A stretch of 64,000 nt of DNA from Macrostomum lignano. Lineage: Eukaryota. Location: assembly GCA_002269645.1 (NCBI GenBank), contig NIVC01004407.1, positions 1 to 64,000 of the forward strand, in the 5' to 3' direction. A program made the translations under genes and the position numbers. The notes beneath the pieces were generated by a model. That model ran no database searches. It worked only from the letters and a program-made list of their open reading frames with translations, and was not told the DNA's origin. Shown piece after piece: positions 561 through 64,000 of the stretch. Positions within the stretch are counted from its first letter, which is position 1. Each line of letters opens with the position of its first letter.

Positions 561-13061
<12,501 letters not shown>

Positions 13062-13994: not shown

Positions 13995-14360
13995 ATCCTC
14001 CCATACCCTCAGCTGCAGCCTCCCATACCCTCAGCTGCAGCCTCCCATACCCTCAGCTGCAGGGCCAGCCTCCCATACACTCAGCTGCAGCCTCCCATAC
14101 CCTCAGCTGCAGGGCCAGCCTCCCATACCCTCAGCTGCAGGGCCAGCCTCCCATACACTCAGCTGCAGCCTCCCATACACCCAGCTGCAGCCTCCCATAC
14201 CCTCAGCTGCAGCCTACCGCCAGCCTCCCATACCCTCAGCTGCAGGGCCAGCCTCCCATACCCTCGGTTACTGGGCTACCGCCAGCCTCCCAGACCCTCA
14301 GCTGCAGGGCCAGCCCCCCATATCCTCGGTTACTGGGCTACCGCCAGCCTCCCAGACCCG
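13995..14360. repeat. 22/28-bp minisatellite (CAGCCTCCCATACCCTCAGCTG +/- CAGGGC)
   Basis: Visible tandem units. Confidence 0.88.
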
Positions 14361-15592: not shown

Positions 15593-16327
15593 AAGATGGA
15601 GGCGGCCCCAAAAGTCCTGAATCGAGCGCGCCAAGAGGTGCCGCCCCTGAAGAGGCGCTGAACGTGCTGCGGCGTATCCGGCCGCTGGGCTGAAATCCCA
15701 CGCGAATCCATGGCCGCTGCGGTCCCGCAGCGCTCGGGGAGCCCTGCATCAATTAATCGAACTGGGAGGGCGGGGCAGCAGCTGCGGAAAGTCCTTCACT
15801 CCGACTGATAATAAAAATGGCTGCTTTTTCTTCAGCTGAAATATCCGGGGCCTGCGATGCGGGATAAATGCGCGTGGCTTGAAGGCTCACTAGACAAATC
15901 TGAGCCATTTTGCCCTCTACAGTCTTGTGGCGATGGGGAATTAGCGGCCGAGCAGCTGCTCAGCAGAGAAGAATGAGCCGCAGCCCCCCTGTTGCCGGGC
16001 CGCCAGTAGATGCCCCCGCTGTCCCTTCATCCCAGCCTCCGCTGCCTCATTAATTTTGCCCGTGAGAGCCGCGCCATCTGCTGGTCGGCAGGTCCTTATC
16101 CCGATAATCCCGATAAACTCCTCTTTTCTATGGGGAGTTTTCCCCTGCTTATCCCACTTGTCCTCGGCGCGCCCTGCCGGTCATCCGGGCCTCCTGCCTC
16201 AGGCGGCCGGCGGCTGCGGGATTGGCAGCGAAAAACTCGATACCTCAGTGGGAGAATAAACAGGGATTTGAGGTCGGGGGCTGCATCTCTCAAAGAGCAT
16301 GCTTTGCTATTCGACTCAAGCCGAACT

Positions 16328-16885
16328 GCCAGATCCTCAGTTACTGAGCTGTCTCCTTCCCAGATCCTCAGTTACTGAGCTGCCTCCTTCCCAGATCCTC
16401 AGTTACTGAGCTGCCTCCTTCCCAGATCCTCAGTTACTGAGCTGTCTCCTTCCCAGATCCTCAGTTACTGAGCAGCCTCCTCCCCAGATCCCCAGTTACT
16501 GAGCTGCCTCCTTCCCAGATCCTCAGTTACTGAGCTGCCTCCTTCCCAGATCCCCAGTTACTGAGCTGCCTCCTTCCCAGATCCTCAGTTACTGAGCTGC
16601 CTCCTTCCCAGATCCCCAGTTACTGAGCTGCCTCCTTCCCAGATCCCCAGTTACTGAGCTGCCTCCTTCCCAGATCCTCAGTTACTGAGCTGCATCCTTC
16701 CCAGATCCTCAGTTACTGAGCTGCATCCTTCCTAGATCCCCAGTTACTGAGCTGCCTCCTTCCCAGATCCTCAGTTACTGAGCTGCCTCCTTCCCAGATC
16801 TTCAGTTACTGAGCTGCCTCCTTCCCAGATCTTCAGTTACTGAGCTGCCTCTTTTCCAGATCCTCAGTTACTGAGCTGCCTCCTC
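16328..16885. repeat. 31-bp minisatellite (CAGATCCTCAGTTACTGAGCTGCCTCCTTCC)
   Basis: Direct tandem periodicity. Confidence 0.95.
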
Positions 16886-29740: not shown

Positions 29741-30935
29741 GAATGTACGCCGAGAATCTGCATGAAGTCTCCCTGAAAATTATCCAGAGATTCCCGCCGA
29801 GGTTTCCCTTGAGGGTCCCCTCCGAAATCTCCGCAGCTTCAAATCTCCCTGGAAGTGACTCGTGAGCAACCCGAAATTTTCCGTCACCTTTTGGTCCACT
29901 TTGGCAGAAATTTCACCGTCAATCGCCTTCCAGCAACAGTCAAGAGTCGAACCTCGGTGGCAGAGACAAGGGGAGCATTGCCTTTCTCCGTGAGCGCATT
30001 CCCGTCCGATGAGCAAACAAAACCTGCAAAAGCTGGCGATCTGCCGCAGCTCTGCTTTTCCCCACACGCGATTGGCTGCTCAATCATGCCAGCTCGATGA
30101 ACTCAAAATGATGCAGATGCTTGCAGATCCTGGCGAGGCTTGTGAAAGTCTAACTAAATAAAAGCAATTCTCAATGCGACCCCGTGCCCCTCACTTTGCA
30201 ACCATCGTTTGTGTTCTGTTTCAAAAATTTAGCATGCAAAAACACTTGAACACGTTTATTAGTTGGTATTTTTTATAAGTACTTCAGTATAACATTAGGA
30301 GTCCATACTGCAAGGCTCTACTAATAGTAAGCGGGCTAAGCAGCTTTAAAATTCTTTGTAGACACACAAATTGATCTCGCCCTTGACTTAGCAGCCGTGA
30401 CAAACCGAGTTTTTCTTGACCATAAAGACCACTTTTACCAGCTGCTGGTAGATGTAGATGTACTTACGTGAGTTTCTGGAATGCGAACTAAAAATCCTCA
30501 GACTCAAATGCGGCCATCTTTCAGATTCAACTATTTCAGAGCTGCGCTGGGGAAACAGAATATTGCTCTTTGCAGTTCAGCTTAGGGGCAGTTGACTTAA
30601 TCCAGAGTAACGGACTTATTAAGGATGCAGTGACTGTTTAATTTTGATTAGGAGTTGTCAAAACTGAAGCGGACCTTTTGGGTACACAAACCAGTGTCAG
30701 TTTTGAAGCAACTGTCAAAATGGAATCGGACTTTGCTGTCCAACTAGTCAGGCTGTTTTAGTCTATGTGTGCAAAAGGATGGAGAAAAATATTTTTTTCA
30801 ATACTTGTACATCCCAAAATCAAGGTCAAATTGAGCTGCTTTTAATTGGATTACTTTGTTACCGAGTTTTCCTAGGCGATGTTGACTAAACGTGCATTGT
30901 CTCACGCTGTACGCTCATTATTCAACGCTTGAACC

Positions 30936-32028
30936 TCCATGCCTCTGTGACTGTCTCTGTACGCACCTCCCATGCCTCTGTGACTGTCACTGTACGCACC
31001 TCCCATGCCTCTGTGACTGTCACTGTACGCATCTCCCATGCCTCTGTGACTGTCACTGTACGCACCTCCCATGCCTCTGTGACTGTCACTGTACGCACCT
31101 CCCATGCCTCTCTGTGACTGTCACTGTACGCATCTCCCATGCCTCTGTGACTGTCACTGTACGCACCTCCCATGCCTCTGTGACTGTCTCTGTACGCACC
31201 TCCCATGCCTCTGTGACTGTCTCTGTACGCATCTCCCATGCCTCTGTGACTGTCACTGTACGCATCTCCCATGCCTCTCTGTGACTGTCACTGTACGCAC
31301 CTCCCATGCCTCTGTGACTGTCACTGTACGCATCTCCCATGCCTCTGTGACTGTCACTGTACGCACCTCCCATGCCTCTGTGACTGTCACTGTACGCATC
31401 TCCCATGCCTCTGTGACTGTCACTGTACGCACCTCCCATGCCTCTGTGACTGTCACTGTACGCATCTCCCATGCCTCTGTGACTGTCTCTGTACGCATCT
31501 CCCATGCCTCTGTGACTGTCACTGTACGCACCCTCATGCCTCTGTGACTGTCTCTGTACGCACCTCCCATGCCTCTGTGACTGTCACTGTACGCACCCCC
31601 ATGCCTCTGTGACTGTCTCTGTACGCACCTCCCATGCCTCTGTGACTGTCACTGTACGCACCTCCCATGCCTCTGTGACTGTCTCTGTACGCACCCTCAT
31701 GCCTCTGTGACTGTCTCTGTACGCACCCTCATGCCTCTGTGACTGTCACTGTACGCACCCTCATGCCTCTGTGACTGTCTCTGTACGCACCCTCATGCCT
31801 CTGTGACTGTCACTGTACGCACCCTCATGCCTCTGTGACTGTTTCTGTACGCACCCTCATGCCTCTGTGACTGTCACTGTACGCACCCTCATGCCTCTGT
31901 GACTGTCTCTGTACGCACCTCCCATGCCTCTGTGACTGTCACTGTACGCATCTCCCATGCCTCTGTGACTGTCTCTGTACGCACATCCCATGCCTCTGTG
32001 ACTGTCACTGTACGCACCCTCATGCCTC
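30936..32028. repeat. 35-bp minisatellite (CCATGCCTCTGTGACTGTCACTGTACGCACCTC-type)
   Basis: About 30 units. Confidence 0.95.
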
Positions 32029-32890
32029 TATCGCGCTCCATTTAATATTTGTTTGAGCAAAAAAATTGCCCTTTCTCGCCTTCCAGCTTATCACTTCCCA
32101 AGCCACTGAAGACGACAGTTAGCTCGTAAGAGCTTTTCGTCATCATAGTGTCTATAAAAGGGGGTGGCGGTGCAGGCCCAAGACATCCAGCTGTGCTTGC
32201 TAGTGGGCCATTCAGCCGCCGGCGAGGGCCAATTGGGCTTCTCGTGTCACAGACTTTCAATTTGATGGAGCATCTGTTGACAAATCCTAAATACGAGCGG
32301 TTTCGAAACCTCTAAAGCAGCAAGGCTTTAGTCATGGCAGAAGGATCTCCCTAAACGCCATGGTAGACTTCGAGTCTGAGAGTTTGCTTTTGCAATAAAC
32401 GTGCTCTGACAAAATGCGACTCGAACACAGCAAATCAGAAGTTTTCTTTGAGAAAACTGAAAGAAACTTAAAGAAAGTTAGGAAAAATTGGGGCGGACGC
32501 AATCTTGTGCCGTTTGAGGCAACTTGTGTGTGGAAAAAATGAAGTAAACAATTAGTGACGGGTGCAAAACAATCCCAGCAGACAGGCGAAATAAAAGTGG
32601 CGAAGTCAACTCGGCGGCACAGCAATGAAAATTTCCGCTTCAAAAGAAAGCCGCTCCTGGCTGACAACGTCGATTCGCCGGGGAGTATGCAGAAGCCTGA
32701 CGATCATTTCGACAGCTACCAAAAACACAGAGCCATAAAAGTCCTCGCCGCCCGCCCCCGCCCCTATGAAGGCTTCCGGACTCTCTTTTACATTTATTGA
32801 GTTCGATTCACACCTCCGAGCTTTCTGTAACTCGCGATTTTCAATACTTTCATTTAAAGATTCGATCAAACTCCTTCAACAAGCCGAGCC

Positions 32891-33061
32891 ATGCTGAGAC
32901 TTCTGATGCTTCTCGTCGCTCTGGTTCTGGTAGGCGCCGCGCAACTGGCGGCTGGCGACTGCAGCTGCGACGCTGAGAGTGACGATGGCAGCTGTGTTGG
33001 AGAGCCTGAAAACGTGTGCAATCTCGGCTTCTGCGTTGGTCAGGGCGGCTGCATGCTATGA
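32891..33061 (+). CDS. Small secreted cysteine-rich peptide precursor (56 aa)
   Basis: MLRLLMLLVALVLVGAAQLAAG-DCSCDAESDDGSCVGEPENVCNLGFCVGQGGCML*. Good Kozak context (GCCATG), hydrophobic signal-like N-terminus, 6 Cys, AATAAA at 33120-33125. Below the 60-aa cutoff of the ORF track. Confidence 0.72.
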   Translation: MLRLLMLLVALVLVGAAQLAAGDCSCDAESDDGSCVGEPENVCNLGFCVGQGGCML

Positions 33062-33209
33062 TCGAGCGGCAGCCTCGCTTTCAAATGAACTATAGAGTCA
33101 ATAAGCTTCTTTGACTCTGAATAAATGTGATATAGCATTGCAGCTTATTACCAGCTCTTTGGGCAATGCTAGCATCCAAAAAAGCTTTGTTGTGATGTCT
33201 TAATCATTT

Positions 33210-34065
33210 CAGTCAGTCAGTCAGTCAGTCAGTCAGTCAGTCAGTCAGTCAGTCAGTCAGTCAGTCAGTCAGTCAGTCAGTCAGTCAGTCAGTCAGTCAG
33301 TCAGTCAGTCAGTCAGTCAGTCAGTCAGTCAGTCAGTCAGTCAGTCAGTCAGTCAGTCAGTCAGTCAGTCAGTCAGTCAGTCAGTCAGTCAGTCAGTCAG
33401 TCAGTCAGTCAGTCAGTCAGTCAGTCAGTCAGTCAGTCAGTCAGTCAGTCAGTCAGTCAGTCAGTCAGTCAGTCAGTCAGTCAGTCAGTCAGTCAGTCAG
33501 TCAGTCAGTCAGTCAGTCAGTCAGTCAGTCAGTCAGTCAGTCAGTCAGTCAGTCAGTCAGTCAGTCAGTCAGTCAGTCAGTCAGTCAGTCAGTCAGTCAG
33601 TCAGTCAGTCAGTCAGTCAGTCAGTCAGTCAGTCAGTCAGTCAGTCAGTCAGTCAGTCAGTCAGTCAGTCAGTCAGTCAGTCAGTCAGTCAGTCAGTCAG
33701 TCAGTCAGTCAGTCAGTCAGTCAGTCAGTCAGTCAGTCAGTCAGTCAGTCAGTCAGTCAGTCAGTCAGTCAGTCAGTCAGTCAGTCAGTCAGTCAGTCAG
33801 TCAGTCAGTCAGTCAGTCAGTCAGTCAGTCAGTCAGTCAGTCAGTCAGTCAGTCAGTCAGTCAGTCAGTCAGTCAGTCAGTCAGTCAGTCAGTCAGTCAG
33901 TCAGTCAGTCAGTCAGTCAGTCAGTCAGTCAGTCAGTCAGTCAGTCAGTCAGTCAGTCAGTCAGTCAGTCAGTCAGTCAGTCAGTCAGTCAGTCAGTCAG
34001 TCAGTCAGTCAGTCAGTCAGTCAGTCAGTCAGTCAGTCAGTCAGTCAGTCAGTCAGTCAGTCAGT
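33210..34065. repeat. (TCAG)n perfect microsatellite, ~855 bp
   Basis: Visible. Confidence 0.99.
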
Positions 34066-34469
34066 CTAGCATATGCCATAATCGAGTTAAAGTTAAACTT
34101 TAGCTGCGTTTTAGCAGAGGCCAAGGACCACTATGTACCGCTGTATATAGCTATAATGCTACAAGCCGGTGAAAAATAACTGGTTAAAACAAAGCTGGAT
34201 GCTATGTTTGCAAATTGTTTGGTTGAAAAAAAAAAGATAGGTCACTCAAAAAGAATTATGTAAATTTTCTAAGCGCATTAAAAAAGAAAACATAAATGCA
34301 GAGATGTACGACTAAAGGAAAGTTACCGTTAAAATAATAAAGAAATTACCGAAATATCCGTTATAAATTGTTGAAATAATCGTGGTGTTGTACCATTTGT
34401 TGTTAGTACTAGGCGTAGTTTAGTACAGTACGCGGATCTAGTGGTAAATGGCGTAAGTGACAGCTTTGA

Positions 34470-42799: not shown

Positions 42800-45700
42800 C
42801 ATAATCCATTTAGTTTGGGCGATTTTAATTAATCCATTGTCCAATTTGTGAGATTTCCAAGAATCCATTTCCTAATATGGGGAGATTTCATTAATCCATT
42901 TCCCAATTTGGAGATTCATTAATCCATTGTCCAATTTGTGAGATTTCCAATAATCCATTTCCTAATATGGGGAGATTTCATTAATCCATTTCCCAATTTG
43001 GAAAGATTCATTAATCCATTGTCCAATTTGTGAGATTTCCAAGAATCCATTTCCTAATATGGGGAGATTTCATTAATCCATTTCCCAATTTGGAAAGATT
43101 CATTAATCCATTGTCCAATTTGTGAGATTTCCAATAATCCATTTCCTAATATGGGGAGATTTCATTAATCCATTTCCCAATTTGGAAAGATTCATTAATC
43201 CATTGTCCAATTTGTGAGATTTCCAAGAATCCATTTCCAATATGGAGATTTCATTAATCCATTTCCCAATTTGGAAAGATTCATTAATCCATTGTCCAAT
43301 TTGTGAGATTTCAAGAATCCATTTCCTAATATGGGGAGATTTCATTAATCCATTTCCCAATTTGGAAAGATTCATTAATCCATTGTCCAATTTGTGAGAT
43401 TTCCAAGAATCCATTTCCTAATATGGGGAGATTTCATTAATCCATTTCCCAATTTGGAAAGATTCATTAATCCATTGTCCAATTTGTGAGATTTCCAAGA
43501 ATCCATTTCCTAATATGGGGAGATTTCATTAATCCATTTCCCAATTTGGAAAGATTCATTAATCCATTGTCCAATTTGTGAGATTTCCAAGAATCCATTT
43601 CCTAATATGGGGAGATTTCATTAATCCATTTCCCAATTTGGAAAGATTCATTAATCCATTGTCCAATTTGTGAGATTTCCAAGAATCCATTTCCTAATAT
43701 GGGGAGATTTCATTAATCCATTTCCCAATTTGGAAAGATTCATTAATCCATTGTCCAATTTGTGAGATTTCCAATAATCCATTTCCTAATATGGGGAGAT
43801 TTCATTAATCCATTTCCCAATTTGGAAAGATTCATTAATCCATTGTCCAATTTGTGAGATTTCCAATAATCCATTTCCTAATATGGGGAGATTTCATTAA
43901 TCCATTTCCCAATTTGGAAAGATTCATTAATCCATTGTCCAATTTGTGAGATTTCCAAGAATCCATTTCCTAATATGGGGAGATTTCATTAATCCATTTC
44001 CCAATTTGGAAAGATTCATTAATCCATTGTCCAATTTGTGAGATTTCCAAGAATCCATTTCCTAATATGGGGAGATTTCATTAATCCATTTCCCAATTTG
44101 GAAAGATTCATTAATCCATTGTCCAATTTGTGAGATTTCAATAATCCATTTCCTAATATGGGGAGATTTCATTAATCCATTTCCCAATTTGGAAAGATTC
44201 ATTAATCCATTGTCCAATTTGTGAGATTTCAATAATCCATTTCCTAATATGGGGAGATTTCATTAATCCATTTCCCAATTTGGAAAGATTCATTAATCCA
44301 TTGTCCAATTTGTGAGATTTCAATAATCCATTTCCTAATATGGGGAGATTTCATTAATCCATTTCCCAATTTGGAAAGATTCATTAATCCATTGTCCAAT
44401 TTGTGAGATTTCCAAGAATCCATTTCCTAATATGGGGAGATTTCATTAATCCATTTCCCAATTTGGAAAGATTCATTAATCCATTGTCCAATTTGTGAGA
44501 TTTCCAATAATCCATTTCCTAATATGGGGAGATTTCATTAATCCATTTCCCAATTTGGAAAGATTCATTAATCCATTGTCCAATTTGTGAGATTTCCAAG
44601 AATCCATTTCCTAATATGGGGAGATTTCATTAATCCATTTCCCAATTTGGAAAGATTCATTAATCCATTGTCCAATTTGTGAGATTTCCAAGAATCCATT
44701 TCCTAATATGGGGAGATTTCATTAATCCATTTCCCAATTTGGAAAGATTCATTAATCCATTGTCCAATTTGTGAGATTTCCAAGAATCCATTTCCTAATA
44801 GGGAGATTTCATTAATCCATTTCCAATTTGGAAAGATTCATTAATCCATTGTCCAATTTGGGAGATTTCCAAGAATCCATTTCCTAATATGGGAGATTTC
44901 ATTAATCCATTTCCCAATTTGGAAAGATTCATTAATCCATTGTCCAATTTGTGAGATTTCCAAGAATCCATTTCCTAATATGGGAGATTTCATTAATCCA
45001 TTTCCCAATTTGGAAAGATTCATTAATCCATTGTCCAATTTGTGAGATTTCCAAGAATCCATTTCCTAATATGGGGAGATTTCATTAATCCATTTCCAAT
45101 TTGGAAAGATTCATTAATCCATTGTCCAATTTGTGAGATTTCCAAGAATCCATTTCCTAATATGGGGAGATTTCATTAATCCATTTCCAATTTGGAAAGA
45201 TTCATTAATCCATTGTCCAATTTGGGATTTCCAAGAATTCATTTCCTAATATGGGGAGATTTCATTAATCCATTTCCCAATTTGGAAAGATTCATTAATC
45301 CATTGTCCAATTTGTGAGATTTCCAAGAATCCATTTCCTAATATGGGGAGATTTCATTAATCCATTTTCCAATTTGGAAAGATTCATTAATCCATTGTCC
45401 AATTTGGGAGATTTCCAAGAATCCATTTCCCAATATGGGGAGATATTATTAATCCATTTCCCAATTTGGAAAGATTCATTAATCCATTGTCCAATTTGTG
45501 AGATTTCCAATAATCCATTTCCCAATTTAGGAGATTTCATTAATCCATTTTCCAATTTAGGAGATTTCAATTAATCCATTTCATAATTTAGGAGATTTCA
45601 TTAATCCATTTCTTAATTTAGGAGATTTCATTAATCCATTTCTTAATTTAGGAGATTTCATTAATCCATTTCTTAATTTAGGAGATTTCATTAATCCATT

Positions 45701-46932
45701 TCCCAATTTGGGAAGACTCATTAATCCATTGTCCAATTTGGGAGATTTCATTAATCCATTTCCCAATTTAGGAGATTTCATTAATCCATTTTCCAATTTG
45801 TGAGATTTCCAAGAATCCATTTCCTAATATGGGGAGATTTCATTAATCCATTTCCCAATTTAGAAAGATTCATTAATCCATTGTCCAATTTGTGAGATTT
45901 CCAAGAATCCATTTCCTAATATGGGGAGATTTCATTAATCCATTTCCCAATTTGGAAAGATTCATTAATCCATTGTCCAATTTGTGAGATTTCCAAGAAT
46001 CCATTTCCTAATATGGGGAGATTTCATTAATCCATTTCCCAATTTGGAAAGATTCATTAATCCATTGTCCAATTTGTGAGATTTCCAATAATCCATTTCC
46101 CAATATGGGGAGATTTCATTAATCCATTTCCCAATTTGGAAAGATTCATTAATCCATTGTCCAATTTGGGAGATTTCCAAGAATCCATTTCCTAATATGG
46201 GGAGATTTCATTAATCCATTTCCCAATTTGGAAAGATTCATTAATCCATTGTCCAATTTGTGAGATTTCCAAGAATCCATTTCCTAATATGGGGAGATTT
46301 CATTAATCCATTTCCCAATTTGGAAAGATTCATTAATCCATTGTCCAATTTGGGAGATTTCCAAGAATCCATTTCCTAATATGGGGAGATTTCATTAATC
46401 CATTTCCAATTTGGAAAGATTCATTAATCCATTGTCCAATTTGTGAGATTTCCAAGAATCCATTTCCTAATATGGGGAGATTTCATTAATCCATTTCCCA
46501 ATTTGGAAAGATTCATTAATCCATTGTCCAATTTGTGAGATTTCCAAGAATCCATTTCCTAATATGGGGAGATTTCATTAATCCATTTCCCAATTTGGAA
46601 AGATTCATTAATCCATTGTCCAATTTGGGAGATTTCCAAGAATCCATTTCCTAATATGGGGAGATTTCATTAATCCATTTCCCAATTTGGAAAGATTCAT
46701 TAATCCATTGTCCAATTTGTGAGATTTCCAATAATCCATTTCCCAATTTAGGAGATTTCATTAATCCATTTCCCAATTTGGAGATTCATTAATCCATTGT
46801 CCAATTATGGAGATTTCCATTAATCCATTTCCCAATATGGGAGATTTCATTAATCCATTTCCCAATTTGTGAGATTTCCAATAATCCATTTCCAATTTAG
46901 GAGATTTCATTAATCCATTTCCAATTTGGAAA
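42800..46932. repeat. 92-bp higher-order satellite of three diverged ~30-bp subunits (31+29+32), locally monomeric at ~45520-45790
   Basis: Period of 92 measured (42971 vs 43063); the array runs into the assembly gap. Confidence 0.95.
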
Positions 46933-47854
46933 NNNNNNNNNNNNNNNNNNNNNNNNNNNNNNNNNNNNNNNNNNNNNNNNNNNNNNNNNNNNNNNNNNNN
47001 NNNNNNNNNNNNNNNNNNNNNNNNNNNNNNNNNNNNNNNNNNNNNNNNNNNNNNNNNNNNNNNNNNNNNNNNNNNNNNNNNNNNNNNNNNNNNNNNNNNN
47101 NNNNNNNNNNNNNNNNNNNNNNNNNNNNNNNNNNNNNNNNNNNNNNNNNNNNNNNNNNNNNNNNNNNNNNNNNNNNNNNNNNNNNNNNNNNNNNNNNNNN
47201 NNNNNNNNNNNNNNNNNNNNNNNNNNNNNNNNNNNNNNNNNNNNNNNNNNNNNNNNNNNNNNNNNNNNNNNNNNNNNNNNNNNNNNNNNNNNNNNNNNNN
47301 NNNNNNNNNNNNNNNNNNNNNNNNNNNNNNNNNNNNNNNNNNNNNNNNNNNNNNNNNNNNNNNNNNNNNNNNNNNNNNNNNNNNNNNNNNNNNNNNNNNN
47401 NNNNNNNNNNNNNNNNNNNNNNNNNNNNNNNNNNNNNNNNNNNNNNNNNNNNNNNNNNNNNNNNNNNNNNNNNNNNNNNNNNNNNNNNNNNNNNNNNNNN
47501 NNNNNNNNNNNNNNNNNNNNNNNNNNNNNNNNNNNNNNNNNNNNNNNNNNNNNNNNNNNNNNNNNNNNNNNNNNNNNNNNNNNNNNNNNNNNNNNNNNNN
47601 NNNNNNNNNNNNNNNNNNNNNNNNNNNNNNNNNNNNNNNNNNNNNNNNNNNNNNNNNNNNNNNNNNNNNNNNNNNNNNNNNNNNNNNNNNNNNNNNNNNN
47701 NNNNNNNNNNNNNNNNNNNNNNNNNNNNNNNNNNNNNNNNNNNNNNNNNNNNNNNNNNNNNNNNNNNNNNNNNNNNNNNNNNNNNNNNNNNNNNNNNNNN
47801 NNNNNNNNNNNNNNNNNNNNNNNNNNNNNNNNNNNNNNNNNNNNNNNNNNNNNN
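46933..47854. other. Assembly gap (922 N)
   Basis: Run of N. Confidence 1.
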
Positions 47855-48180
47855 ATTGTACTTTAGACTGGTATCTTAACCATTGTACTTTAGTCTGGCA
47901 TCTAAAACTATTGTACTTTAGTCTGGCATCTAAAACTATTGTACTTTAGTCTGTATCTTAACCATTGTAATTTAGTCTGGCATCTAAAACTATTGTACTT
48001 TAGTCTGGCATCTTAACCATTGTACTTTAGTCTGGTATCTAAAACTATTGTACTTTAGTCTGGCATCTTAACCATTGTACTTTAGTCTGGTATCTAAAAC
48101 TATTGTACTATAGTCTGGCATCTTAACCATTGTACTTTAGTCTGGCATCTTAACCATTGTACTTTAGTCTGGTATTTTAA
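47855..48180. repeat. 31/32-bp intronic minisatellite (AACCATTGTACTTTAGTCTGGCATCT-type), shared with the paralog at 62184-62900
   Basis: Visible. Confidence 0.92.
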
Positions 48181-48193
48181 CCAGTGCACTTAC

Positions 48194-51100
48194 ATATTTA
48201 TTAACGAACGGGAACAGAACTCCCATTGAAAACAGTCCAAGCAATGGGGCCACAAACGAACCAGTGAAAGCAAGCGATGCCTGAAGCACCGTTCCACCGA
48301 ATCGAGTCGAAATTAGGCCCATTAATACCGCTGAGACTCCATAGCACACGACTGAAACAGATATAATAGCGGAAATATTGGTCGGAAAGCAGTACGTTGC
48401 AGCCAGCTTCCAACAGCAGTCACAGAGACATCTGTAGTTTTCGGCTGTGTCAGCTGGCGCCTTTCTGTAGCTAGCGCCTCCCTCTGTAGCTAGCGCCTCC
48501 CCTCTGTAGCTGGCGCCCCCTCTGCAGCTGGCGCCTTTCTGTAGCTAGCACCTTCCCTCTGCAGCTAGCGCCTCCCCTCTGCAGCTAGCACCTCCCCTCT
48601 GTAGCTAGCGCCTCCCCTCTGTAGCTGGCACCCCCTCTGCAGCTGGCGCCTTTCTGTAGCTAGCGCCTCCCCTCTGTAGCTAGCGCCTCCCCTCTGCAGC
48701 TAGCGCCTCCCCTCTGTAGCTGGCGCCTCCCCTCTGTAGCTAGCGCCTCCCCTCTGTAGCTAGCGCCTCCCCTCTGTAGCTAGCGCCTTCCTCTGTAGCT
48801 GGCCCCCTCTGTAGCTGGCGCCCCCTCTGCAGCTAGCGCCTCCCCTCTGTAGCTAGCGCCTTCCCTCTGTAGCTGGCGCCCCCTCTGCAGCTAGCGCCTC
48901 CCCTCTGTAGCTAGCGCCTTCCCTCTGTAGCTGGCGCCCCCTCTGTAGCTGGCGCCCCCTCTGCAGCTAGCGCCTCCCCTCTGTAGCTAGCGCCTTCCCT
49001 CTGTAGCTGGCGCCCCTCTGCAGCTAGCGCCTCCCCTCTGTAGCTAGCGCCTTCCCTCTGTAGCTGGCGCCCCCTCTGTAGCTGGCGCCCCTCTGCAGCT
49101 AGCACCTCCCCTCTGCAGCTAGCGCCTCCCCTCTGTAGCTGGCGCCTCCCCTCTGTAGCTGGCGCCCCTCTGCAGCTAGCGCCTCCCTTCTGCAGCTAGC
49201 GCCTCCCCTCTGTAGCTGGCGCCCCCTCTGTAGCTGGCGCCCCCTCTGCAGCTAGAGCCCCCCCCTCTGTAGCTAGCGCCTCCCTCTGTAGCTGGCGCCT
49301 CCCCTCTGCAGCTAGAGCCCCCCTCTGCAGCTAGAGCCCCCCTCTGCAGCTAGAGCCCCCCTCTGCAGCTAGCGCCTCCCCTCTGTAGCTGGCGCCCCTC
49401 TGCAGCTGGCGCCCCCTCTGCAGATGTAGTTTCAGCAAAGAAACTGAAGCTATTTAATTTTTTCCAACCGGGGAAAGAGCCGAAATTTTAAAGTATTTCG
49501 CGTGCATTTTTTGTTTTGCCTGCCTAATTGATGTTCATATTCAATATTCAATTCAATTGGGAAATATTCAAAGTTTTTATTTTCTGCATCCCTCGTTTTG
49601 GTTCCTGATTGAAACCTAAGTTGAAAATTAAAAATTGTTTTAAAAAATTAGACAGCCGTTTTTGGCTTTTTTGCTACGACTAGCTGAATGAATTGGAGGA
49701 CAAATCGCTATTCAGTCAGGGAAAGGGATTACAGCCCATAACTCTAGCAGTAAGCACAGCAGTCTCTTACTAAACAGGCGGTTGATCCACGTAGCTTTAG
49801 CCTCGTAGCGTTCAGGCACCAGTAGGGCTTGAAAAAATCTTCCCATGTTGTGGCAGCCAGCGCGCTCAAGGATGACGATACCGAACTGCAACACAATGGC
49901 ATCAGCAGCATTCAATGCCTAATGTTTAATGGGTGAAACTGAAAGGGAGAAAAAGCATTTAGTTTCAAGAGCTGCTCACACAAGAACCCTTCCTTACCTC
50001 AGGGCTCCGGCGAATAGCGAAGCGATGAATAGGCCAGGAACCACTGGTATGCTGAGGTTTTCCATCACATAGAATGGAACGATCTGTACTGAAAAAACAC
50101 ACGCGATCATGTTAATATGCTAAATACATATATGCTCGTATATATTATGAAGTTTATTGTTGCTTTTGTATTAAAGACAGTGCTGCGTGCACCCTGGCGC
50201 ACTTTAAGCGACATTGTCACACAACCGGCGAGAGGCATCACTGCCCATTCCGCCGACTCCCCTGAGCAGGCACACAAGCGTGCGGATACGTACGCAGTCA
50301 TACGCACAGGCACACACTCACACAGGAGTGCACAGCGGCCCTAACTTTATTTATCGTTAGGCATGTACACTTCACTGTGCCTTGGGGTTGGCCCTCAAGC
50401 TGGGCGTTAATTGCACGAGCAGAGCCAAGCCGAGATTCCAATTTAGCCGCAAATTAATGCGACTGCACTTGGAATCGAGCCTGGGTCGCTGGCACATCAG
50501 AGCGCCGCGCCAGACCACTGGGCTACGGCCCCCCCGCACATGTACCATGCCTAAAAATCATAAAAAGGCTACAGCCCCCCCGCACATGTACCATGCCTAA
50601 AAATCATAAAAAAGGCTACGGCCCCCCGCACATGTACCATGCCTAAAAATCATAAAAAAGGCTACGGCCCCCCGCACATGTACCATGCCTAAAAATCATA
50701 AAAAAGGCTACGGCCCCCCGCACATGTACCATGCCTAAAAATCATAAAAAGGCTACAGCCCCCCCGCACATGTACCTTGCCTAAAAATCATAAAAAAGGC
50801 TACGGCCCCCCCCCGCACATGTACCATGCCTAAAAATCATAAGAAATAAGACAACTCGACTGATTTCAAGATTCGGGGCCAAAGCTCACATGTGAACTGC
50901 TGTTTAGATTCAACCAGTAGATGTATAAACTTAGAGCCCTGAGTCGATCTTGTGACAATGGTCCGTCTAGTGGTAATAAAAGTAAGAAAGTGGCCACTAG
51001 GGTTGGTCCAAAAATCAACAATTTCTCTAGTTTCATACTGCTACATCTTCATTTCTATTTCTATGTTGTATACTTTTTCATCCCATATTTCTGTTGCCAC

Positions 51101-57355: not shown

Positions 57356-58326
57356 TCAAACAGAAGCAGCCACCATGCATTCAAAAGTCTTCATTGAGTA
57401 GTAGTGGTTCAGCGGATAGCCAATGCCTGGGGAAGAGAACGTAAGTCCGTCGGCCCACAACGGCTCAGACAAGTAAAAAGCTGCTGGAGGCGTGAAGTAC
57501 CGACCGTTCGGGTTGAAGCAGTGACAACTGCAGTACCACCAGGCTCCTTGGTAGGTGACTGCGCAGTTACTGGACCATGTGTCTTGATCCTTATCCTGTG
57601 TGCTGAACATCGCATTGTTCATGTAGGCACCAACGGTATGACTGCAAGTTGCAACATTCGACCGACTGACATCAGGCTCTCCGACGCTGACTCGGTATCC
57701 TTGACTGGCGTCCTGCACGGCGAAGTTAGCGTCCTCCCACCAGTAGCGAGTGCCGTTCCAGTCGCCCGGCTCCCACCTCACGCGCCTGTCTCCGGCTCGA
57801 GTGAGCTGGTGGATCGCTTCCAGACCCATCCAGTAGTTTCTGTCCTCGCCCTGTCCGAACTCAGTCAAGTAGTTTGTCCAGTTCCGGTAGAAATCTACCG
57901 AGCCGTCCACTCGGTGCTGGAAGGTTCGCCAGCAGGTTCGTCCGAGCTCGTCCAGCTGTCTCACCTGTAATATCACGGTTAGCCAAATGCATAACGATTG
58001 CAACAGACATTGGAATAAAAATGGATCGCACGGTGAGCACCTACCAGCAGCAGAGGCAGAGTCGAGTTTCTCGCATTGCGGCACTTTCTGCATCCGCTCG
58101 TTCCAAGCTGGCAGCTGTACAATCGACAAGTGTACCGCTCGCGATCGAACTTAATCGCTTGGTGCTGCGGTCTAGCGAGAGTCGCGCACTCCAAGTCGCT
58201 CCGCACGCCAGCCACCGAGCTGTCAAGCTTGTACTCGCTCAGGTCGTCTCTCTGCACGGTCCAGTTGAGCTGCGACGAAGCAGTTCTACACAGCAGAGTG
58301 ATTACTACAAGAAGTTCAGCATTCAT
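57356..58326 (-). CDS. Secreted fibrinogen-related domain protein (FReD) with an N-terminal PAN/apple-like segment, ~296 aa
   Basis: Exon 1 58326-58045 (signal-like MNAELLVVITLLC..; SDLECATL..CRLY), 80-nt GT-AG intron, exon 2 57964-57356. FReD motifs: FQHRVDGSVDFYRNW..Y..FG..YWMGLE.IHQLT, FST.D.D.D..SSNCA..YQGAWWY..CH..NPNG. Confidence 0.88.
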
Positions 58327-60541: not shown

Positions 60542-63072
60542 CTAGTCTGTTTTCTTATCAGCAACTGGTCGATCCTCCTCTCCTGATTGGCCTTCACGCT
60601 TAGGTTCGTCAGTTACTTCTCCTGGCTGCACCTCGTCTTCTGATTGGTTGACAGGCTTAGGTTCGTCGGTTGCTTCTCCTGGCTGCACCTCGTCTTCTGA
60701 TTGGTCGACAGGCTTAGGTTCGTCATCACCCCTCCGACTCGGAGAGTTGGACTGCTTGGAAAGCTCAGACACCTCAATCGCTTCCGTGTCATCGACAGGC
60801 TGCACAGCGTTGCTGGGAGTGGCGCGCATCAGGTTTATGTTGCAGGAGCGACTTAGGAACTTGTAGAAGCGAACAAAGTACGGATTGATAAATGCTTCGT
60901 CGACTTCTTCGCGGTAGCCGCCTTAAATAAGTATAGAATTAATTAAAATTTCGAATTCGTTAAACCAGACGCAACTAGCATTAAAACAAACTGCTTACGC
61001 GTAAATAACGACACAATAAAGCCGCCAGCCGTGGTTGCAGCGGATCCGATTATGGGAAACCACACATAGGAGAGGCTGTACCAGTCGTCGAGAGGTTCTC
61101 TAAGAAGTGTCCAAGATGTAATTTAAAAAAAACGATCAAATTAGTTCAAGAGCCAATTGAATCGAAGTTCTACGACGTAGTAACAGTGTAGGTCTATAAT
61201 ATCTTTAGCGTCCCGCAAAGAGTGGTTTAATTGCGTCACACAAGACAGTGGATATGGTGTCCCACAAGAGAGTGGTTGGCATCAAATCCCACAAGAGAGT
61301 GGACATTGCGTCCCACAGCTACAAGAGAGTGGATATGGTGTCCCACAAGAGAGTGGATATGGTGTCCCATAAGAGAGTGGACATTGCGTCCCACGGCTAC
61401 AAGAGAGTGGATATGGTGTCCCATAAGAGAGTGGATATTGCGTCCCACGGCTAAAAGAGAGTGGATATGGTGTCCCATAAGAGAGTGGACATTGCGTCCC
61501 ACGTCTACAAGAGAGTGGACATTGTGTCGCATAAGAGAGTGGACATTGCGTCCCACGGCTACAAGAGAGTGGATATGGTGTCCCATAAGAGAGTGGACAT
61601 TGCGTCCCACGGCTACAAGAGAGTGGACATTGCGTCGCATAAGAGATTGGTGAGCATTACATCCAACAAGATAATGGACATTGCGTCTCACGTCTACAAG
61701 AGAGTGGACATTGTGTCGCATAAAAGATTGGTGAGCATTACATCCAACAAGATAATGGACATTGCGTCCCATAAAACGTGGACATTGCGTTCCACAATGG
61801 AATGGAATTTCATGTACTAAAATTAAGTACGTTTGCACTTCCCCCTATTCATTACTTTTGAAGCGATCGAGCGTCATTAGATAAGTCACTGCGATGCTTA
61901 CACAACAGGAGCTTGCGTAGTCCCAACTGTGGTCGGCAGCAGGGTGGTGCCGGGAGTGCCAACGTCGCAATTGCTAATATTCGTTGGCAATCCAACAAGT
62001 TGTTTTCCATTCAGATAGGAACCAATGCTGAGCCAGCTGGATATAATCAGGCCGCAAACGGAGCCAACGAGAGCACCCTATGAATTTGTTGTGAAAAATT
62101 GCGCTGTTTAAACTTTGCTATTGAATACTGAAATTTATCAACTCAACATTGCATTTCGTTTGTCATCTGACCATATTAATTGCGTCTGGTATCTTAACCA
62201 TTGTACTTTAGTCTGGTATCTAAAACTATTGTACTTTAGTCTAGTATCTTAACCATTGTACTTAGAGGGGGCCGTAGCCCAGCGGTAGAGCAGCTGCTCT
62301 GGTGTGCCAGCGACCCAGGCTCGATTCCAAGTGCAGTCACATTAATTTGGGGCTGAATTGGAATCTCGGCTTGGCTCTTCTCGTGCAATTAACGGCCTTG
62401 AGAGCCAACCCCCCAAGGCGCAGTGAAGTGTACATGCCTAACGATAAAATAAAGTTAGGGCCGCTGTACACTCCTGTGTGAGTGTGTGCCTGCGTACGTA
62501 TCCGCGCGCTTGTATGCCTGCTCAGGGGAGTCGGCGGAATGAGCAGTAATGCCTCTCGCCGGTTGTGTGCCTATGTCGCTTAAAGTGCGCCAGGGTGCAC
62601 ACAACCCCCTGCCTCTAATAAAAAAAACCATTGTACTTTAGTCTGGTATCTAAAACTATTGTACTTTAGTCGGTATCTTAACCATTGTACTTTAGTCTGG
62701 TATCTAAAACTATTGTACTTTAGTCTGGTACCTTAACCATTGTACTTTAGTCTGGTATCTAAAACTATTGAACTTTAGTCTGATATCTAAAACTATTGTA
62801 CTTTAGTCTAGTATCTTAACCATTGTACTTTAGTCTGATATCTAAAACTATTGTACTTTAGTCTAGTATCTTAACCATTGTACTTTAATCTAGTATCTTA
62901 ACCAGTGCACTTACATATTTATTAACGAACGGGAATAGAACTCCCATTGAAAACAGTCCAAGCAATGGGGCACCAAAAGAACCAGAGAAAGAAAGCGATG
63001 CCTGAAGCACCGTTCCACCGAATCGAGTCGAAATTAGGCCCATTAATACCGCTGAGACTCCATAGCACACGA
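60542..63072 (-). CDS. SLC5 sodium:solute symporter, copy B, 3' exons (5' part lies beyond the window)
   Basis: Exons 63072-62915, 62077-61902, 61099-60999, 60921-60542 (TAG), phases consistent. GALVG..WLSIGSY, PLDDWYSLSYVW, acidic repeat tail. Exon 63072-62915 is near-identical to 48351-48194. Confidence 0.9.
61240..61795. repeat. Degenerate ~26-33-bp minisatellite (CAAGAGAGTGGACATTGCGTCCCAC-type)
   Basis: Visible. Confidence 0.88.
62184..62900. repeat. 31/32-bp intronic minisatellite interrupted by a SINE
   Basis: Same unit as 47855-48180. Confidence 0.92.
62267..62627 (+). mobile_element. Full-length tRNA(Ala-like)-derived SINE, ~360 bp, with A-tail
   Basis: A-box-like TAGCCCAGCGG, B-box-like GGCTCGATTCC, AATAAAAAAAA tail, and AACCATTGTACTT on both sides. 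Confidence 0.87.
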
Positions 63073-63169
63073 CTGAAACAGATATAATAGCGGAAATATT
63101 GGTCGGAAAGCAGTACGTTGCAGCCAGCTTCCAACAGCAGTCACAGAGACCTCTGTAGTTTTCGACTGT

Positions 63170-64000
63170 GTCAGCTGGCGCCTTTCTGTAGCTAGCGCCT
63201 CCCCTCTGTAGCTGGCGCCCCCTCTGCAGCTAGCGCCTCCCCTCTGTAGCTGGCGCCTCCCCTCTGTAGCTAGCGCCTACCCTCTGTAGCTAGCGCCTTC
63301 CCTCTGTAGCTAGCGCCTCCCCTCTGTAGCTAGCGCCTCCCCTCTGTAGCTAGCGCCTCCCCTCTGTAGCTAGCGCCTCCCCTCTGTAGCTGGCGCCTCC
63401 CCTCTGTAGCTGGCGCCTCCCCTCTGTAGCTAGCGCCTCCCCTCTGTAGCTAGCGCCTCCCCTCTGTAGCTAGCGCCTCCCCTCTGTAGCTAGCGCCTCC
63501 CCTCTGTAGCTAGCGCCCCCTCTGTAGCTGGCGCCTCCCCTCTGTAGCTGGCGCCCCCTCTGTAGCTGGCGCCCCCTCTGCAGCTAGCGCCTTTCTGTAG
63601 CTAGCGCCTCCCCTCTGCAGCTAGCGCCTCCCCTCTGTAGCTAGCGCCTCCCCTCTGTAGCTAGCGCCTCCCCTCTGTAGCTAGCGCCTCCCCTCTGTAG
63701 CTGGCGCCTCCCCTCTGTAGCTGGCGCCTCCCCTCTGTAGCTAGCGCCTCCCTCTGTAGCTAGCGCCTCCCTCTGTAGCTAGCGCCTCCCCTCTGTAGCT
63801 AGCGCCTCCCCTCTGTAGCTAGCGCCCCTCTGTAGCTGGCGCCTCCCCTCTGTAGCTGGCGCCCCCTCTGTAGCTGGCGCCCCCTCTGCAGCTGGCGCCT
63901 TTCTGTAGCTAGCGCCTCCCCTCTGCAGCTAGCGCCTCCCATCTGTAGCTGGCGCCTCCCCTCTGTAGCTAGCGCCTCCCTCTGTAGCTGGCGCCCCCTC
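63170..64000. repeat. 20-21-bp minisatellite (CTCTGTAGCTAGCGCCTCCC), paralogous to 48455-49425
   Basis: Visible; runs to the window end. Confidence 0.95.

Follow-up and report, generated by a model that had tools for sequence, protein, structure and literature searches.

The window that we analyzed (the whole stretch of Macrostomum lignano DNA, 64 kb in length) very probably contains a real, so far unannotated single-exon gene that encodes a tiny acidic secreted peptide. The gene is best explained as the third, deeply diverged member of a small uncharacterized family that is restricted to Macrostomum as far as databases reach. We consider it likely that the gene is intact, that it is the third paralog in this orphan family of secretory mini-proteins, and that its product works as an extracellular effector. 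Small secreted disulfide-rich peptides are a well-known kind of molecule and are routinely overlooked in genome annotation; what is new is this gene and its family membership.

The reading frame and the encoded peptide were as an earlier note on this DNA had described them. The frame opens with an ATG in the context gagCCATGc and runs for 56 codons to a TGA. The translation of 32891-33061 is MLRLLMLLVALVLVGAAQLAAG followed by DCSCDAESDDGSCVGEPENVCNLGFCVGQGGCML, that is, a leader ending A-A-G and a mature part of 34 residues with the framework C-x-C-x8-C-x7-C-x4-C-x5-C. A composition count gave seven D or E and no K, R, or H. The C-terminus reads ..GGCML, two residues past the last cysteine, and neither a dibasic processing site nor an amidation signal is present in the peptide. 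The AATAAA that the earlier note had placed about 60 nt past the stop is 58 nt after the TGA. The features of the locus are:

32734-32739, + strand: CATAAA box, invariant; at -157 from the ATG in the window and at -148 and -177 in the other loci
32771-32782, + strand: GGCTTCCGGACT, a 12-nt promoter-proximal motif, invariant in three loci
32791-32796, + strand: TATA-like CATTTA box, invariant in three loci
32821-32890, + strand: predicted 5' UTR, about 70 nt, placed from the position of CATTTA
32891-33061, + strand: mini-gene open reading frame, 56 codons, 171 nt, single exon, ATG at 32891
32891-32956, + strand: predicted signal-peptide coding region, codons 1-22, MLRLLMLLVALVLVGAAQLAAG, with predicted cleavage between G22 and D23
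32957-33058, + strand: predicted mature-peptide coding region, 34 aa, six cysteines, net charge about -7
33059-33061, + strand: TGA stop codon, TGA also in all three paralogs
33062-33125, + strand: 3' UTR ending in AATAAA (33120-33125); AATAAA invariant, at +229 from the ATG in the window and at +213 and +219 in the other loci
33134-33170, + strand: inverted repeat or hairpin, AGCATTGCAGCT ... AGCT ... GCAATGCT, just past AATAAA and conserved in sequence
33209-34066, + strand: (TCAG)n microsatellite, 214.5 copies with a 100% match by TRF, which ends the unit in all paralogs

The coding sequence of the mini-gene is a GC island (0.60, vs 0.46 and 0.39 in the flanks), and its N-terminal segment was the most hydrophobic among the 233 ATG-initiated open reading frames of at least 40 aa in the 64-kb window.

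The peptide is probably secreted, as judged from the n-, h-, and c-regions of its leader, the -3/-1 rule, and conservation. The leader has R3 in the n-region, a 14-residue hydrophobic core from L4 to A17, and small residues at -3 and -1 (A20 and G22). Leaders of the paralogs end A-x-A ahead of D-x-C-S-C. The family as a whole has the leader pattern MLR[LF]LMLL.AL.LV..A.Q, with no variation in 17 of the first 22 columns of the alignment. Pfam searches with the paralog leaders gave sub-threshold matches only, to Defensin_propep (E 0.04-0.14) and KASH; the Defensin_propep matches show only that the paralog leaders look like secretory leaders.

The window peptide has two true relatives, both from M. 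lignano and both deposited as 'hypothetical proteins'. An exhaustive phmmer search of 1.84 billion representative proteins gave three matches, including Mlig013770 and Mlig020725 (E = 5.6e-5 and 2.7e-4, respectively), and tblastn against the paralog loci gave E values of about 1e-11 to 1e-13. A family profile search returned the same two relatives and no further members. BOX15_Mlig013770g1 (PAA93506.1) is 56 aa long and aligns end to end with the window peptide. BOX15_Mlig020725g1 is 82 aa long and recorded as 'partial'; it consists of 29 codons of 5' UTR that were read through plus an open reading frame of 53 aa. The accessions of BOX15_Mlig020725g1-g3 are PAA58764.1, PAA49576.1, and PAA47085.1, copies g2 and g3 lie in the same F-box/kinase neighborhood, and the DNA of g1-g3 is 98.5-99.1% identical. 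Because these genome copies differ by only 0.9-1.5%, we take the window gene to be an old paralog. At the protein level, the window peptide is 54-55% identical to the two relatives.

The relatives have the same overall structure as the window gene. They share the D-x-C-S-C start, six cysteines in the same order, and the Q-G-G-C end; at the level of the locus they share the leader, the cysteine scaffold, a single-exon coding sequence, the upstream blocks, AATAAA, the 3' hairpin, and the terminal (TCAG)n. The earlier note had proposed looking for stops or unconserved cysteines in homologs, and the frames of both relatives are open, with all six cysteines in place. The differences lie in the lengths of the loops, which vary by in-frame indels, in the net charge (about -3 and 0, vs -7 in the window), and in the genomic neighborhoods, which are without synteny (none was found between the window and L001 or L002, the loci of the relatives). 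Only the window copy is unannotated. The description of the peptide as strongly anionic therefore holds for the window copy and not as a family trait: with paralogs at -3 and 0, charge is not the common denominator of the family.

The cysteine framework of the family is undescribed. The possibility of a new family, raised in the earlier note, was borne out in that the relatives carry no database name beyond 'hypothetical protein', belong to no Pfam family, and are absent from the searchable literature. There was no Pfam family at E<=10 for the window peptide or its mature part, and none above threshold for the paralogs. PDB sequence and profile searches gave chance matches only (E about 1-7), a word-indexed protein search with the single window peptide gave no match, and neither did metagenome scans with the family alignment and with the 3' element. 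The exact window peptide was not found among about 15 billion predicted proteins, in protein clusters, or in any recorded gene call. No further paralogs were found within the 64-kb window or in the 20 kb around each relative. Neither the gene IDs nor the signature peptide strings turned up in searchable full texts or in the article supplements searched, and a literature search found neither a cell atlas nor a disulfide-rich peptide paper for M. lignano.

The top phmmer match, a bacterial DUF11 repeat protein (P0001), was rejected as a relative. The likeness consists of one short motif and involves the window copy only: each repeat of P0001 carries SC.G.P..VCNLG, which is near-identical to the C13-C21 loop of the window peptide and is absent from the paralogs. 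Comparison of the family profile with P0001 gave a probability of 5.3% over 19 columns, the window peptide itself having no Pfam match. We judged the likeness to be coincidence or convergence.

The three loci have in common a unit of ~0.5 kb that extends from the promoter to the microsatellite. We aligned the window locus with L001 and L002 (the latter is the locus of Mlig020725) and found no homology beyond this unit, whose upstream limit is CATAAA. The motif GGCTTCCGGACT has a single copy in the 64-kb window and a single copy in each of L001 and L002, and the three positions are homologous; the CTTCCGG within it resembles an ETS-type site. Transcription in the window is predicted to start at about 32821, ~30 nt past CATTTA. 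There is no upstream ATG within the predicted 5' UTR, and the only upstream ATG, at 32766, precedes the predicted start site. In L002, the position 30 nt past CATTTA is at -89 from the ATG, and the transcript-derived partial coding sequence begins at -87. This coincidence with a transcript-derived 5' end supports a TATA-type promoter.

Conservation continues past AATAAA. The block at 33127-33208 (~80 nt past AATAAA) is 71-81% identical among the paralogs, compared to 83-87% for the leader. For the hairpin within it, RNAalifold gave 12 pairs and -10.6 kcal/mol, with no compensatory changes. Rfam searches were negative, both at the gathering threshold for the window and at E<=1 for the locus. 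The block could be an element for 3'-end processing or termination, or the mRNA could run past the first AATAAA. The (TCAG)n that follows is 856 bp in the window, compared to 96 bp in L001 (10313-10411) and about 340 bp in L002 (10392-10731). It evidently belonged to the duplicated unit and then expanded in the window.

The remainder of the window is rich in repeats and contains several other genes or parts of genes. Tandem repeats masked by TRF make up 40% of the 64 kb, which fits the published account of the M. lignano genome as more than half repetitive, with 15% simple and tandem repeats and large-scale duplication (PMC5730564). A 33-bp minisatellite (30933-32029) lies on one side of the mini-gene and the (TCAG)n array on the other, GC content drops to about 0.30 in a block at 34-36 kb, and a six-frame scan of the non-repetitive open reading frames of 55 aa or more over 21,000-42,000 found no Pfam domain. 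A minisatellite with units of about 28-31 bp (CAGCCTCCCATACCCTCAGCTGCAG-like) is at 13997-14359 and 16326-16883 in the window and, with about 70% identity, at 850-1512 in the otherwise unrelated contig L002. An AT-rich satellite of 4.1 kb (42828-46932; 92-bp unit, about 45 copies) abuts the only assembly gap of the window, 922 N long (46933-47854). Right after this gap begins the first copy of a direct duplication (47904-49262 and 62624-63998; 14.7 kb apart, 90.7% identity) that holds a 20-bp minisatellite and a sodium:solute-symporter-like exon. At about 860-13,000 on the + strand is a gene for an ABCC/MRP-type ABC transporter, with a TMD, two ABC_tran NBD exons, and introns packed with minisatellites. 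Its exons at 860-1234 and 2364-2537 are 97.6% and 98.3% identical to an M. lignano UniRef protein (P0013), which is apparently frameshifted relative to the window over 3316-3606. This identity places the window in M. lignano or in a very close relative or genome copy; the closest ENA match to the ABCC exon is a metagenome contig, which is uninformative as to species. A gene for a fibrinogen-related protein is on the - strand at 57356-58129, as a long open reading frame with a match to Pfam Fibrinogen_C (E = 2e-36).

The mature region of the mini-gene has diverged more than the DNA around it. Identity among the paralogs was 83-87% in the DNA of the leader, 41-55% in the mature part, 71-81% past AATAAA, and 59-71% in the 5' flank, where the window is 59-61% identical to the annotated paralogs and these are 71% identical to each other. 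The mature region was less identical than the leader and 3' flank together (Fisher p = 9e-12, 7e-5, and 7e-4). In the loops, pN was 0.51-0.74, compared to a p of 0.21-0.41 in the flanks. Synonymous divergence was 0.76-1.21 in the mature part and 0.17-0.45 in the leader.

The coding frame and the cysteine scaffold were maintained through this divergence. The +0 frame is the sole frame that is open in all three loci, all of the indels among them are in frame, and the six cysteine codons and the TGA are kept throughout. Twelve mature positions are invariant, in the pattern D, C-S-C, C, C, G, C, Q-G-G-C (three more cysteines and a G lie between C-S-C and Q-G-G-C). From these comparisons, the scaffold appears to be under purifying selection and the loops appear to change at least as fast as expected under neutrality, a pattern compatible with diversifying selection. 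Because there are three sequences, the alignment of the loops is uncertain, and dS in the mature part is also high, positive selection on the loops is only suggested.

We considered whether the reading frame might be no gene, or a gene that no longer works. A frame of only 56 codons, in a window that is 40% tandem repeat and in a region overlapped by many spurious open reading frames, could be a chance frame in repeat-rich non-coding DNA. However, three dispersed loci keep the frame, the cysteines, the stop, and the flanking signals despite scrambled loop DNA, and the two relatives are transcript-supported gene models; on this comparison, a chance origin is effectively refuted. RNA-seq, trans-splice, and poly(A) reads underlie the Mlig_3_7 annotation, which holds the paralogs (PMC5730564), and since this transcript-based annotation contains Mlig013770 and Mlig020725, we read both paralogs, indirectly, as transcribed. 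Unlike these two subfamilies, the window copy is missing from every annotation searched. It could be a silent or decaying paralog that has lost expression, with an intact-looking frame kept by recent ancestry and with the two annotated subfamilies doing the work. We think this improbable. The exact window peptide is in no gene call or protein set and the two relatives were captured by transcript-based annotation, but absence from the annotation may also reflect a locus that is missing or collapsed in the annotated assembly. The window copy has the most diverged 5' flank of the three and an expanded microsatellite, and the ~20 kb in which it lies hold satellite arrays on either side of it but no other recognizable coding exons. 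Yet the divergence is old (about 22% over the unit, with loops near-randomized), and the locus nevertheless retains its ATG, frame, and stop, every one of the 12 scaffold residues, and intact copies of CATAAA, GGCTTCCGGACT, CATTTA, and AATAAA; neutral drift of a 171-nt open reading frame over such divergence would be expected to lose some of these elements. The claim of the earlier note that this DNA hides a gene for a small secreted six-cysteine peptide is probably right: the paralogs keep the frame and the cysteines, and the exact peptide is in no gene call.

As an intact gene, the locus would make a secreted peptide that binds a partner outside the cell. By homology to the paralog gene models, transcription would begin ~30 nt past CATTTA, behind GGCTTCCGGACT, and would stop after AATAAA. 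The anatomy and conservation of the 22-residue leader suggest that it would direct the product to the ER and be cleaved between G22 and D23. The 34-residue product would fold on three presumed disulfides formed by the six invariant cysteines, with the invariant C-S-C start and Q-G-G-C end. It would then bind an extracellular partner through the loops between the cysteines; these loops change faster than the surrounding non-coding DNA and would set the specificity of binding. The rate pattern is observed and the role is what we propose from it. With seven acidic residues and none that are basic, the window copy probably has a cationic partner, which could be a protein, a surface, or divalent metal ions.

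A conserved leader, a fixed cysteine scaffold, and hypervariable loops are typical of defense or toxin peptides and of reproductive (seminal-fluid) peptides. By analogy, the most likely role is that of an extracellular effector of the antagonistic or recognition type, either in defense (or as a toxin) or in reproduction. More specifically, the peptide might act in reproduction, in seminal fluid or otherwise; gland cells of the prostate or elsewhere in the genital system would then produce it, and it would be passed on during mating. M. lignano has 76 prostate-limited transcripts, of which at least 64 are predicted to be secretory (PMC5977470), and reproduction-related genes in Macrostomum are fast-evolving and hard to place in orthogroups (PMC7336406, PMC10468722). 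Given so many fast-evolving, lineage-specific, secreted reproductive transcripts, a reproductive role is a serious rival to defense, and the hypervariable loops and the lineage restriction fit that class. However, defense peptides fit the same evolutionary pattern equally well, the searched supplements of the seminal-fluid screen did not contain the signature strings of the family, and none of the supplements searched contained the gene IDs. We regard the specifically reproductive reading as rather unlikely. A further reading casts the window peptide as all or part of the releasing factor in the duo-gland adhesive system, where it would mask the Lys/Arg-rich cohesive protein Mlig-ap1 so that the worm detaches. 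In the model of M. lignano adhesion, a small negatively charged molecule releases the worm by interfering with Mlig-ap1; polyanions (heparin and fondaparinux) block attachment and polycations block release (Wunderer et al., PMC6410801). In 2022 the factor was still an 'unknown negatively charged substance' (PMC9229212). A mature peptide of 34 aa with a secretory leader, seven acidic residues, and no basic ones would suit such a molecule. However, nothing connects the gene with either the tail plate or the releasing glands, neither paralog is polyanionic and charge is not conserved in the family, and the factor may not be a peptide, the experiments of PMC6410801 having used sulfated sugars. Rapid turnover of the loops would also be unexpected for a simple charge-masking agent. 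We consider this reading a long shot. We favor an extracellular effector of the antagonistic or recognition type.

The locus is a case in which a gene for a small secreted disulfide-rich peptide can be validated purely through comparison of paralogs. If the gene is real and expressed, then together with the two 'hypothetical proteins' it defines a flatworm-specific family whose cysteine framework is new and whose loops evolve very fast, and it is a candidate for defense, reproductive conflict, or control of adhesion in a tractable model. M. lignano supports transgenesis, RNAi, and in situ hybridization, so the family is easy to test. The conserved promoter block of roughly 160 nt could serve as a compact, cell-type-specific driver for transgenesis. 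The acidic window copy also provides a concrete candidate for the adhesion-release factor, with a low prior probability; if true, the duo-gland adhesive system would have co-opted an orphan family of three-disulfide peptides.

The duo-gland releasing factor (PMC6410801) and the window peptide come from the same species and are both small, secreted (predicted here for the peptide), and strongly anionic.

Cationic defensin-type antimicrobials were rejected, as the net charge is about -7 and there was no defensin profile match on the mature part. Inhibitor cystine knots (knottins) resemble the window peptide in length (about 30-35 residues), in their number of cysteines (six), and in having a secretory leader. 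Loop 1 of knottins usually has 3-7 residues. In the window peptide, in contrast, loop 1 is a single residue (C-x-C), and CIII and CIV are neither adjacent nor close to each other. The peptide has neither the knottin loop-length consensus nor a match to a knottin family profile, with no Pfam match at E<=10.

Hirudin is, like the window peptide, small, acidic, and secreted, with three disulfides (predicted here for the window peptide), and the two have the local strings NVC and GQG in common. The acidic C-terminal tail of hirudin binds exosite I of thrombin; the window peptide differs in having no such extended tail. We rejected membership in the hirudin family: hhalign gave a probability of 4.4% over 17 columns (with HV1 as the hirudin sequence), the cysteine spacing differs, and no hirudin chain appeared in phmmer or profile searches of PDB at E<=10. 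These results agree with the earlier note, which had called the resemblance superficial.

The closest parallel in organization is to superfamilies of the conopeptide type. These and other disulfide-rich secreted families have a conserved leader, a fixed cysteine framework, and hypervariable loops. Macrostomum is not known to have a venom apparatus. The window family differs from the conopeptide type in that it has no sequence similarity to it and no propeptide, has a single-exon coding sequence, and has only three known subfamilies. What the two have in common, in organization only, are fixed cysteines, loops that outpace non-coding DNA, and raised synonymous change in the mature part.
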